In this document: positions 21,091-26,344 of the stretch, in pieces | How positions within the stretch are numbered: the stretch's first letter is position 1 | How the letters are laid out: the number at the start of each line of letters is the position of its first letter | Sequence record: PP942979.1 | Length of the DNA: 64,000 nt | Reading direction: 5' to 3' (one strand) | The notes under the pieces: model-generated | Told to the model about the DNA's origin: nothing | Database searches by the model: none | What the model saw: the letters and a program-made list of their open reading frames with translations, nothing else | Made by a program: the position numbers and the translations under genes

Positions 21091-21596
21091 ACGAATTACC
21101 GATGAATCTCGATCAGGCTGAACACATTATGGCTAGTGTGTTTACGCTCGCCGGTTCATCGAAGTCCAAACGTCGTGCCACTGCCGCTATGCTCGTTCAC
21201 TTTCATCATGGCTTCCCGACTGTCATCAGTAGCGGTGTGAACGGTACGCAGCCTGGTGAAAGCAACGTTATGGAGAACGACGACCTAACGCTCTCGCTCG
21301 ACACTGTTATTCATGCTGAGGTGAACTGCCTCAATCGCATGGAAGAATACAGCATGTGGGCTGACGAGAAGGACATCCTGTTCTGTACCGATTCGCCGTG
21401 TCCTAACTGCTTGGCTGATCTCGAAGCCGAAGGCGTTAAGACTGTAGTGTACGCGCGTGAGTATCGTCTGACGGAACATCTCGACGCATCGAAGATCAAG
21501 ATGTTCTGCCTGGACATGAAGTCGGTAGAACTCCGTATGCTTCGCGGCATCGAGCGCATGAAAGAAGTAATCGCAACAACACCAGTGTCTAACTAA
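21075..21596 (+). CDS. dCMP deaminase
   Basis: SSGVNG, HAEVN, SPCPNC zinc motif, VKTVVY. Confidence 0.85.
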   Translation: MRCPLNELPMNLDQAEHIMASVFTLAGSSKSKRRATAAMLVHFHHGFPTVISSGVNGTQPGESNVMENDDLTLSLDTVIHAEVNCLNRMEEYSMWADEKDILFCTDSPCPNCLADLEAEGVKTVVYAREYRLTEHLDASKIKMFCLDMKSVELRMLRGIERMKEVIATTPVSN

Positions 21597-21621: not shown

Positions 21622-22398
21622 ATGGAAAACAAATTCGAAACAGGTTTTAAATGCCACCCTCTAACTAAAGAGCAGCAGGACCAAGCGTTCCGCGAGTTCG
21701 ATAGACAGCAACAAAAGTCGCTGGAGCGTCTGGTGCAGATGATTGAATCTGATCCCGTGTTGAGGGCCCAGCACGAAGCGGCTCGTCGTTATGACCATGA
21801 GCAGAAGTTTGGTAGCTTGGACTTCTCTAAACTCGAAGACAGGGTTATGGCTAATGCTGTCATGGGTCGCATGTCTTCACCTAGCAGCAACAGCGAAGAA
21901 CGTGTAGCTGGTACGTTTGAACATTCATCTGGTGTAGTTCGTGGTGTAGTTCAACGCTATCCACGCATGTCCGACAATCTGCCTCGTGATGGTCGCATTA
22001 AAGTTGAAGTAGTACCAGGGAAACGTATGCTGCAAACCGATATTCATCTCGGCGATGTGAAGACAGAAGACCTGTCGCTTGCTATGGCTGCCGTTGCATT
22101 CGGTCTTAGTGGTGAACAGCTTGGCGTCATTCCTGCTCCGGGTGGCGGTCAGTTCGTTGAGCCGGAAACGAAGTTGAGTTACATCGACGAAGCTCCATTT
22201 ATTCCAAATCATCTGCCTCAGCACTACCTGCAATCTGATACAGGCCCAGTGCCTGCGTGTGGTCGTGCTTTGCGTATAGCTCCGAAAGATTCATGGTCTG
22301 CCGAGCGCCGTGACCGTGCTGCGACGTCTGCACCTGCTCGTAAGAAACTCCGTGCCCGTACACGCGCCCAGAAGAAAGCGCGTCGTAAACAACGCTGA
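21622..22398 (+). CDS. hypothetical protein with short PolA-like peptide motifs and an Arg-rich tail
   Basis: DFSKLEDRVMAN, MGRMSS; GAGG RBS. Confidence 0.7.
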   Translation: MENKFETGFKCHPLTKEQQDQAFREFDRQQQKSLERLVQMIESDPVLRAQHEAARRYDHEQKFGSLDFSKLEDRVMANAVMGRMSSPSSNSEERVAGTFEHSSGVVRGVVQRYPRMSDNLPRDGRIKVEVVPGKRMLQTDIHLGDVKTEDLSLAMAAVAFGLSGEQLGVIPAPGGGQFVEPETKLSYIDEAPFIPNHLPQHYLQSDTGPVPACGRALRIAPKDSWSAERRDRAATSAPARKKLRARTRAQKKARRKQR

Positions 22399-22408
22399 GG
22401 TAACAGCA

Positions 22409-22900
22409 ATGAGTAATGAGATTAAACAAGCCTCGATGGAGAGCTACAACGCGCTTGGCCTGCCGAGTGATTTTATGAATCTCGTATCAGACGAAGATGC
22501 CGCAGACTTCGTGGCTAAACTGTCTGACGAGAAACGCCGTAAGCTGACTGTCGGTCTGGCGCTGCTTCATCTGCAAATTCCTGATGCGATTCGTTATGAG
22601 TTGTTGACGAACCACATCGACGAAACTGAGCGTCTGGTTCACAATGCGTTCCAGGACCTGAGCGCTTCGCTGGTAAACAAGCTGTCGCATGAAGGTAGCG
22701 CTGAAACTAAATCAACACTCGGTAGTGTTCGTCTGGCAATGCTGATGAACATTCTGGGCTTTGATGATGCTACTCTTAGTGGCGTCTTGAACGACCCTAT
22801 CCTGACACGCCGCGCAAGCCTTGTTGCTGTGACTGGCTTGAATGAGATGGGTCAGAAAATCCAACAACTGTACGACGAGAAAAACAATGAGCCAACCTAA
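22409..22900 (+). CDS. hypothetical helical protein (163 aa)
   Basis: GAGGT RBS before ATG 22409. Confidence 0.7.
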   Translation: MSNEIKQASMESYNALGLPSDFMNLVSDEDAADFVAKLSDEKRRKLTVGLALLHLQIPDAIRYELLTNHIDETERLVHNAFQDLSASLVNKLSHEGSAETKSTLGSVRLAMLMNILGFDDATLSGVLNDPILTRRASLVAVTGLNEMGQKIQQLYDEKNNEPT

Positions 22901-23030
22901 CGTAGCAACTCAATCAGAAGAAATGGATCTGGATGCAATCCCTGGTCTGGACCCAGATGCAGTAGCACCGAACGGTGTTGATGCAGCAGCATCTGATGAA
23001 GGTTGTGAAGGCGGCGCCTGCAAAATCTAA
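22887..23030 (+). CDS. 47-aa acidic peptide ending in an NrdA-like redox tail (DEGCEGGACKI)
   Basis: C-terminus nearly identical to E. coli NrdA DDGCESGACKI; followed by a terminator. Confidence 0.7.
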   Translation: MSQPNVATQSEEMDLDAIPGLDPDAVAPNGVDAAASDEGCEGGACKI

Positions 23031-23033
23031 TTC

Positions 23034-23056
23034 ATGGGGCCTAGTGCCCCATTTTT
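23034..23056 (+). terminator. rho-independent terminator
   Basis: ATGGGGC-CTAGT-GCCCCAT-TTTT. Confidence 0.75.
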
Positions 23057-23074
23057 CGTTTGAGGATAAAAACG

Positions 23075-24903: not shown

Positions 24904-25241
24904 CACCAGCAATCCGCTTTAACGAGCAGACCTGTGAACTGCTGAAAAAGATCTTCGGCAACAACAAGCCTTTCTTTGTTGTGCGCCGCGACACAATCAT
25001 CGAAAACGATAAGCAGTTCGGTGAGCGTGTGTATCTGGCCAATGGCACGCATGTCATTACCGTGCCTAACGTACAGGGCCTCGATCTCGGAGATAAGCTC
25101 TATCTCGCAGAAGACAGTGAGGTGTACGAGTGGCATCCTCATTTCGACCGCCCCAAATACGAAGCAAGCAACAATCAAAAGGAAGCTCTCGCTTTTGGTC
25201 TTCATCCTATCGTCCATCATAAAGACAGCCGGAACTCTTAA
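24900..25241 (+). CDS. hypothetical protein (113 aa)
   Basis: ATGA overlap. Confidence 0.65.
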   Translation: MTPAIRFNEQTCELLKKIFGNNKPFFVVRRDTIIENDKQFGERVYLANGTHVITVPNVQGLDLGDKLYLAEDSEVYEWHPHFDRPKYEASNNQKEALAFGLHPIVHHKDSRNS

Positions 25242-26344
25242 TGAACAATCAACCTCTCGATCTGCGCGATCCCAATCAGTACGAACTGTATTCTCTGCAT
25301 TGCGTGGATGAACAGTACATCAATCTCGGCAATGCAATTCTGATGCACGGTACTGACGAAACAGATCCCGGTCGTACCGAAGACACGTGGCGCACTCTGA
25401 TCGGTATTGGCTTTCAATTGACCAACACGCTGATCGCTTTCCCTGCGTTGCTATCTGCGCGTAAGAACTGGTTCGCAGCCGTTGATGAAATGTGCTGGAT
25501 GGCTCGCGGTGAAACAAATATCGGCAGTCTCAATTCCAAAATCTGGAACGAGTGGGCGGACGAAGATGGCGAGTGCGGTCCTATCTACGGTCTGATGTGG
25601 CGCATGTGGCCTGATATCAAAACCTTCCCGACTATTGAGTCGATGAAGGAGCGTCAGATTAGCGATGCTGAAATCGAGCGTATCTCCAAAGAGATCAATC
25701 GCATGAAGGCCGCTGGTTACACTGAAACGGAAATGGCTGACGGCCGTGTGTGCTACGAAGGTACAATCGATCAGTTTGCTGATGCTCTGCGTCAGGTAAT
25801 GAATCGCAGTCGCTCACGTCGCATCCGTGTTCAGGCATACAATCCAGCGTATCTCAACATGCAGGGTCTGCCGCCGTGCCACACTGAGTTTGAGTTCAAT
25901 GTGACTAAGCCTACGCTGTATGAAACGGCTCAGATGGAAGCACGTCAGATGGCGCCTGCCGAAGACTCGCTGCACATCACGGTGACCATGCGTTCCAACG
26001 ACACGCTTCTGGGCAGACCGTTCAACATCATCGGCTACAGCGCCATGCACCAAATGATCGCGAAGTGGGCAGGCATGAACGTCGGCAGCTTTACGCTGAA
26101 TACTACCAACACGCATCTGTACACTCACCACTTCGAAGCGTTCAAAAAGCAAAGTGAGCAGTGGGCAGTTCTCGCAGACAACATGAAACGCACTGGCGAA
26201 CCTGTTGTCTATCCTATGCTGGAAATCAGCGACGACATTCTTGGCCTGACTCCGGAAGAGTTGCTTGATAACGCCAATGCTGAATGGTTCCAGCTTCTCG
26301 ATTATGCACCAGCACAGGCAGTCAAAGGACGGGTGACAAAGTGA
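25241..26344 (+). CDS. thyA: thymidylate synthase (ThyA family)
   Basis: DRTGTG-like GRTEDT, IWNEWAD..GPIYG..WR, SRSRR, LPPCH, MRSNDTLLGRPFN, NTHLY. Confidence 0.9.
   Translation: MNNQPLDLRDPNQYELYSLHCVDEQYINLGNAILMHGTDETDPGRTEDTWRTLIGIGFQLTNTLIAFPALLSARKNWFAAVDEMCWMARGETNIGSLNSKIWNEWADEDGECGPIYGLMWRMWPDIKTFPTIESMKERQISDAEIERISKEINRMKAAGYTETEMADGRVCYEGTIDQFADALRQVMNRSRSRRIRVQAYNPAYLNMQGLPPCHTEFEFNVTKPTLYETAQMEARQMAPAEDSLHITVTMRSNDTLLGRPFNIIGYSAMHQMIAKWAGMNVGSFTLNTTNTHLYTHHFEAFKKQSEQWAVLADNMKRTGEPVVYPMLEISDDILGLTPEELLDNANAEWFQLLDYAPAQAVKGRVTK

Follow-up and report, generated by a model that had tools for sequence, protein, structure and literature searches.

The window analysed here, a stretch of 64,000 nucleotides, corresponds to positions 1–64,000 of the genome of Erwinia phage phB78 (PP942979.1), with identical coordinates. 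phB78 is a jumbo phage of 261,824 bp belonging to the genus Alexandravirus, and its host is Erwinia amylovora. The features with which we are concerned are as follows.

21102–21596, + strand: dCMP deaminase (annotation and Pfam).
21622–22398: gene A, 258 aa, of no family and specific to Alexandravirus.
22409–22900, + strand: gene B (SHZ78_034), 163 aa, with homologues only in Alexandravirus-like phages.
22887–23030, + strand: SHZ78_035, 47 aa plus stop, annotated as a hypothetical protein; the detached NrdA-type redox tail discussed below.
22938–22961, + strand: IPGLDPDA motif of SHZ78_035 (residues 18–25), conserved across one large subfamily and not present in the NrdA tails of hosts.
22995–23027, + strand: last 11 codons of SHZ78_035, DEGCEGGACKI, with C-x4-C spacing (by comparison with the NrdA tail).
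23004–23006 and 23019–23021, + strand: codons of Cys40 and Cys45, the counterparts of NrdA C754 and C759.
23034–23062, + strand: terminator-like hairpin (23034–23052; seven pairs, five of them G-C) and T-run, starting 4 nt after the stop codon.
25241–26344, + strand: thymidylate synthase (annotation).

SHZ78_035 lies two genes past the dCMP deaminase and five genes ahead of the thymidylate synthase. Its start is overlapped for 14 nt, in a different frame, by the end of gene B, so that translational coupling of the two is possible judging from the layout of the frames. A preliminary description of this DNA had placed the ORF at 22887–23030, with a terminator behind it and genes for dCMP deaminase and thymidylate synthase nearby; its coordinates coincide exactly with the annotated CDS, both enzymes are present, and a terminator-like hairpin with a T-run does follow the stop codon. 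A terminator is also annotated directly 3′ of the homologue in Klebsiella phage Miami. An alternative start at 22842, which would give a protein of 62 aa, is unlikely because the homologues begin at MSQP or MSE. Searches of Pfam, PHROGs, NCBIfam and the ESM Atlas returned nothing for genes A and B. The predicted structure of the gene B product consists of helices only, nine in number (pLDDT 67), and its fold has no match in the PDB; the C-terminal tail of gene A is strongly basic, being rich in Arg and Lys.

The product of SHZ78_035 is small (4.7 kDa) and acidic (pI 4.05), with 10 Asp and Glu residues against a single basic residue, a Lys. An AlphaFold2 model computed with the family alignment is without secondary structure (mean pLDDT 57, pTM 0.17), which is consistent with a peptide that is disordered as the native NrdA tail is. 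Both the composition and the model are those of the flexible acidic segment found in the alpha tail of class Ia ribonucleotide reductases (RNRs), and the early characterization of the ORF as a 47-aa acidic, unstructured peptide holds.

The C-terminus is what ties this peptide to RNR. The 3′ end of E. coli K-12 nrdA, read from the genome, encodes a protein ending in DDGCESGACKI, to which the end of SHZ78_035 is identical at nine of 11 positions at the exact C-terminus (pairwise BLASTP E 6e-6), bearing out the near-identity that had been claimed. As in class Ia tails, a C-x4-C pair falls within the last eight residues, at the extreme C-terminus, in the context GCE[S/G]GACKI, and a comparison of the family profile with the NrdA tail gave an hhalign probability of 94% (E 1e-7). 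The same profile matches the window at 22881–23027 (E 6.4e-21). Among 80 nrdA loci of Enterobacterales, DDGCESGACKI is the NrdA end in 66, including those of the Erwinia species sampled, and DDGCEGGACKI in nine (Brenneria, Pectobacterium and others), the rest being close variants; the phB78 variant CEGGACKI is thus itself a natural NrdA end in Brenneria and Pectobacterium. Homologues in other phages can be closer still: an AD1-type homologue is identical to the E. coli NrdA tail at 10 of 10 positions (BLASTP E 3e-6), and the phiEaH2 homologue has exactly the ending of Rosenbergiella NrdA. When used in tblastn, the AD1-type peptide also matches the C-termini of annotated NrdA proteins in RNR-encoding phages.

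Statistically supported likeness to NrdA is confined to the last 10–14 residues. Further upstream, a resemblance of an ‘RDG’ in AD1-type peptides to NrdA residues 735–737 was missed by both BLASTP and hhalign and is suggestive only. As a control for chance, among 1141 stop-to-stop frames of at least 30 aa in the window, two end in C-x4-C-x-x, where 1.4 are expected, and SHZ78_035 is the only one of the 1141 that fits the strict terminal motif. A phmmer search with the peptide against PDB chains gave only chance matches, although this method cannot score an 11-residue terminal match. At the DNA level the ORF showed no similarity to E. coli genomes, and there is thus no sign of recent capture. 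Taken together, the sequence comparisons support the interpretation of SHZ78_035 as a free-standing copy of the NrdA redox tail.

Free-standing homologues occur at the syntenic place in all Alexandraviruses. Further homologues are found in Yoloswagvirus, Salmondvirus (JA11), Serratia phage PCH45, Miamivirus, Seoulvirus (SPN3US gp234), Erskinevirus (phiEaH2), Machinavirus, Derbicusvirus and Salmonella phage SA002. Members of the family are 36–167 aa long, mostly small free ORFs with a few fusions, and are spread over at least 10 jumbo-phage lineages and some smaller phages. An exhaustive profile search of 1.84 billion representatives gave 19 matches, of which 17 are small proteins of 39–120 aa, all ending in C-x-[G/S]-G-[A/G]-C-K-[I/L]; the other two, of 3,065 and 271 aa, matched internally and in several stretches and were left out of this description. 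Two of the 17 sit two to four genes from a thymidylate synthase gene. Another is a 40-aa member on SU10-like podophage contigs (Logan), which carry the SU10 portal and adaptor, a family A DNA polymerase and a Hint intein-type domain within a protein of 677 aa. The family thus extends beyond jumbo phages. A tblastn search with this 40-aa member returned no match, the query probably having been masked as low complexity. The family matches three PHROGs of unknown function (phrog_24014, E 1.4e-17; phrog_14561, E 4.7e-14; phrog_38753, E 9.9e-9) and has no model in Pfam or NCBIfam, and our literature search found no description of a free-standing RNR tail.

Conservation within the family centres on the redox motif. 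When 18 members representing at least 10 phage lineages are aligned, only the two Cys and one Gly are invariant, with the terminal Ile nearly so; conservation of the Cys pair, which the preliminary description had proposed as a check, is therefore complete among these members. Across 17 members, between two and four synonymous codons are in use at each conserved position of the tail, which shows that the peptide is under selection at the protein level. Between Alexandravirus and the other genera the peptide retains 50–68% identity, as against 27–30% for thymidylate synthase, and the remaining flanking genes are unrecognisable by BLASTP. Some positions of the tail do vary: the residue after the first Cys may be E, T, A, P or D, the penultimate Lys is replaced by Glu in PCH45 and by Met in JA11, and the Yoloswag tail has C-x2-C spacing, as in eukaryotic R1. 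In many members the N-terminal half carries an acidic amphipathic stretch (the equivalent in the window is 22914–22961), of the form D-x-D-x-L-x-N-hydrophobic-x-hydrophobic in PCH45, Miami and SA002, which resembles the C-terminal tail of E. coli NrdB (DTDDLSNFQL at its end, as read from the genome). Judging from this resemblance, the stretch could anchor the peptide in the NrdB-tail groove of NrdA.

The tail is also found at the end of longer proteins. It sits on a 163-aa protein in SA002 and on a 146-aa protein, gp34, in Yoloswag, and more generally on mutually unrelated proteins of 140–360 aa, the IMG/VR cases being 263–360 aa long and including one (L178) with the Pfam domain Phage_gp49_66 (the N4 gp49/Sf6 gp66 family). 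Neither Yoloswag gp34 nor the SA002 protein is a fusion of gene B with the peptide, there being no significant similarity to gene B. Two other identities for the free peptide were considered. It is not a thioredoxin-fold redoxin (thioredoxin, glutaredoxin or NrdH), as it has no Pfam match, no predicted fold and C-x4-C in place of C-x-x-C; nor does it look like a RiPP precursor, its neighbours having no recognisable enzyme domains and not being conserved between lineages.

The surroundings of the peptide gene vary among lineages within a common theme. In SPN3US, phiEaH2 and the Machina-type and Derbicus-type phages it lies three to six genes past thyA and directly before a MazG-like gene, and in JA11 and Yoloswag it adjoins dCMP deaminase and thyA. 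Thymidylate synthase recurs at about 1–5 kb from the peptide in most jumbo-phage lineages, and among 48 IMG/VR loci, those of the jumbo subfamilies have thyA, a dCMP deaminase gene or a MazG-like gene 0.06–5 kb away on the same strand. The placement of SHZ78_035 in a nucleotide-metabolism block is therefore supported. A conserved three-gene cassette (proteins of about 258 and 160 aa followed by the peptide) was considered and rejected: the sizes recur, but the upstream genes are not homologous, those of Alexandravirus being unrelated to those of the SPN3US/phiEaH2/Machina group and of Derbicusvirus. The phage thymidylate synthases themselves are long, at 367 aa in phB78 and 338–405 aa in its relatives, bacterial thymidylate synthase being about 264 aa.

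phB78 encodes no RNR of any class, as searches with PF02867 (large subunit, classes I and II), PF00268 (class I small subunit) and PF13597 (class III) were all negative. That no RNR catalytic domain is attached to the ORF had been seen from the start, and there is none elsewhere in the genome either. This disposes of two earlier suggestions, that the peptide might be a shuttle for a phage RNR and that a tail-less phage NrdA might be sought elsewhere in the same genome. In the genomes checked we likewise found no thioredoxin or glutaredoxin gene, the candidates being weak, sub-threshold matches in nonsense antisense frames that we rejected, and no flavoprotein of the thioredoxin reductase type. 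With neither an RNR nor a redoxin in phB78, any RNR or redoxin partner of the peptide must be the host's. The proposal of a redox shuttle for RNR, or of a decoy of thioredoxin, glutaredoxin or RNR, thus survives in part: the copied tail, the conserved Cys pair and the nucleotide-metabolism setting stand, while a phage RNR as its target falls away.

The same association extends beyond phB78. PF02867 was absent from all 19 named peptide-carrying phages tested, SPN3US included, and from all 16 further IMG/VR contigs with detached or fused tails, nine of which are at least 90% complete; the positive control, the phiKZ RNR, was found at 238.6 bits. The RNR large subunit is therefore missing from 35 of the 35 genomes that carry a detached tail, a count to be read with the caveat that the lineages are not independent and that many phages have no RNR anyway. 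Conversely, phiKZ has an RNR with an attached tail (ending GCAGGSCTL) and no free peptide. A scan of IMG/VR at the DNA level for the tail motif followed by a stop codon returned 80 loci, which we classified. At about 26 of these the tail ends a genuine phage NrdA, full-length or split; at about 42 it closes a short, free ORF and nothing in the locus matches NrdA, some of these ORFs forming new subfamilies (contigs of roughly 45, 60, 110–195 and 300 kb); and at a few it ends unrelated proteins of 140–360 aa. The split nrdA loci (L127, L129, L151, L154, L164 and L171) encode the protein in two or three separate pieces, with breaks near residues 295/296 and 439/440 in E. coli numbering, and the last piece ends in the tail motif. 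The peptide was not detected by profile in Ea35-70 and RisingSun, two RNR-less Erwinia jumbo phages, although the profile gave one match in each of five known carriers; the peptide is therefore not obligatory for RNR-less jumbo phages. That detached tails were found only in phage genomes lacking RNR suggests an undescribed action on the host's supply of DNA precursors.

What this action might be can be considered in light of how RNR works. The Cys pair of the RNR tail is itself re-reduced by thioredoxin or glutaredoxin, steady-state turnover of E. coli RNR is limited by re-reduction, and in yeast R1 the tail of one protomer reduces its neighbour. In class I RNRs the disordered C-terminal cysteine pair re-reduces the active site (PMC9669993). 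An RNR C-terminal domain that has been separated from its enzyme is able to engage the large subunit in trans (PMC3618301). When gp305, the RNR of phiKZ, is knocked down, plaques are strongly reduced (PMC12571901); flux through RNR is thus important for nucleus-forming jumbo phages with an enzyme of their own, and the nucleotide enzymes of these phages work in the cytoplasm (PMC12908238). phB78, having no RNR, must rely on that of its host for the de novo supply of deoxyribonucleotides.

We tentatively propose, at somewhat less than an even chance, that the peptide is a mobile dithiol arm that joins host thioredoxin or glutaredoxin to the re-reduction of NrdA and so sustains host RNR or raises its activity. 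Host thioredoxin 1 or glutaredoxin 1 would reduce the C-x4-C end of the peptide as it does the native NrdA tail; the free dithiol would then exchange with the oxidised active-site pair C225/C462 of host NrdA, or with its oxidised native tail; and this extra, untethered route for re-reduction would sustain or raise dNDP output during phage DNA synthesis. All of these binding and electron-transfer steps, together with the sign of the effect (sustaining versus inhibiting), are ones that we infer. In a reducing cytoplasm a conserved dithiol would presumably matter only through exchange with an oxidised partner, for which, given this motif, host NrdA would be the natural choice. Because both cysteines are retained, reversible redox cycling is favoured over a dead-end trap, and we favour a sustaining role over that of a decoy or inhibitor.

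Several observations temper this proposal. The native tail is tethered and so present at high local concentration, and a free peptide may add little unless it is anchored; candidate anchors, on sequence grounds, are the IPGLDP motif and the acidic D-x-L-x-N-hydrophobic stretch. A fuller version, in which the peptide acts as a diffusible ‘portable swinging arm’ and makes the re-reduction of host RNR intermolecular instead of intramolecular, perhaps anchored on NrdA by the NrdB-tail-like motif, we regard as rather doubtful. The peptide is also not obligatory, as Ea35-70 and RisingSun attest, and its penultimate Lys and Cys spacing vary. Finally, restriction to RNR-less genomes is equally expected of an inhibitor that would poison the phage's own RNR, and hence separates neither a shuttle nor an inhibitor from the other.

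That inhibitor deserves consideration in its own right. A free tail might compete with the native NrdA tail for thioredoxin or glutaredoxin, or for the active-site channel of NrdA, and so throttle host RNR, for example in order to stop host replication or to re-route reducing power; yeast Sml1 and the C-terminal domain of Neurospora UN-24 would be the models for such an action. The peptide does share a recognition element with the native substrate tail. In yeast, growth is inhibited by the complex that a detached RNR C-terminal domain makes with Rnr1 (PMC3618301). That RNR-encoding phages lack the peptide is also what one would expect if it could poison an RNR bearing the same tail. Yet RNR-less phages of 40–320 kb would starve their own replication if the sole de novo source of dNDPs were blocked, a free peptide competes poorly with a tail that is tethered, and a stable trap would be favoured by loss of the resolving cysteine, whereas both Cys are invariant; we therefore think a decoy unlikely. 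An action that bypasses RNR altogether seems to us similarly improbable, namely that the tail is a docking handle for thioredoxin or glutaredoxin and serves some other partner, be it gene B, the phage thymidylate synthase, the domains to which the tail is fused or a non-RNR host protein. The 14-nt overlap with gene B, the recurrence of the peptide gene beside thyA and the conserved IPGLDP motif, which is absent from NrdA, would fit such a partner, as would the attachment of the tail to unrelated proteins (in SA002, in Yoloswag gp34 and in IMG/VR, including the N4 gp49/Sf6 gp66-family domain). But these fusion partners also differ from one another, the upstream neighbours are not homologous between phage lineages, gene B is all-helical with no fold match, and we found no phage enzyme with a known requirement for a dithiol reductant.

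The peptide could, alternatively, have no function at all and be what a deletion of the catalytic body spared of an ancestral phage nrdA, namely its 3′ end. It is common for phage nrdA genes to bear the same tail, restriction to RNR-less genomes would follow trivially, and the place of the peptide in many lineages is that of nrdA after thyA in T4-type genomes. We nevertheless consider a neutral relic highly improbable, since the ORF is intact with its own start in at least 10 lineages whose flanks have diverged past recognition by BLAST, its tail residues have been kept through synonymous changes, and between Alexandravirus and other genera it is better conserved than thyA. A relic by origin that was later retained for a function is possible. 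As to its origin, the tail may have been captured from a host nrdA or may descend from an nrdA that an ancestral phage possessed.

DNA precursors are made de novo by RNR alone, and the way in which a tethered two-cysteine tail re-reduces the enzyme is found in textbooks; should the peptide act in trans, the tail arm would be a portable module. Such an arm would mean that the phage controls the host's DNA-precursor factory directly, up or down, and would account for the means by which large RNR-less phages secure or manipulate their dNTP supply. It would represent a new class of host-takeover factor, made from a disordered fragment of the target enzyme, and would offer both a natural reagent for dissecting RNR re-reduction and a peptide route to modulating bacterial RNR. 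The family concerned is widespread, in many jumbo-phage lineages and in smaller phages, and is unnamed in Pfam and NCBIfam.

Among known systems, the alpha tail of class Ia RNR (E. coli NrdA C754/C759) is the closest, sharing with the phage peptide the end motif G-C-E-[S/G]-G-A-C-K-I, the C-x4-C spacing and the acidic disordered context. The class Ia tail, however, is joined to the RNR body, whereas the phage peptide is not continuous with a catalytic barrel (Pfam PF02867), is the product of its own gene in phages that lack RNR, and has conserved N-terminal motifs (IPGLDP or the acidic amphipathic stretch) that are absent from NrdA. RNR genes in pieces are known from phages, as in the split nrdA of Aeromonas phage Aeh1, and NrdA of this type, including that of the split IMG/VR loci, resembles our case in being made as separate polypeptides, the last of which (at the IMG/VR loci) bears the same tail. 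There, all catalytic pieces are present and adjacent and the last piece includes barrel sequence, while the detached-tail phages have the tail only and no body in the genome.

Other comparisons concern the mode of action. The PA incompatibility domain of Neurospora UN-24, the C-terminal 135 aa of an RNR large subunit, is a detached region that acts in trans on an RNR large subunit (PMC3618301). It is eukaryotic and much longer, its toxicity is allele-specific, and it has no sequence relation to the phage peptide. Yeast Sml1 is a small disordered inhibitor of RNR that acts at the R1 tail and re-reduction step, but it shows no sequence similarity to the peptide, needs no Cys pair and is a cellular checkpoint regulator. 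Phage-encoded redoxins for RNR, such as the T4 thioredoxin NrdC and NrdH, are alike in representing a phage investment in the reductive half-reaction of RNR. These are folded, thioredoxin-fold proteins that serve a phage RNR, whereas the peptide of phB78 and its relatives is an unfolded arm from the substrate side, carried by phages with neither RNR nor redoxins of their own.
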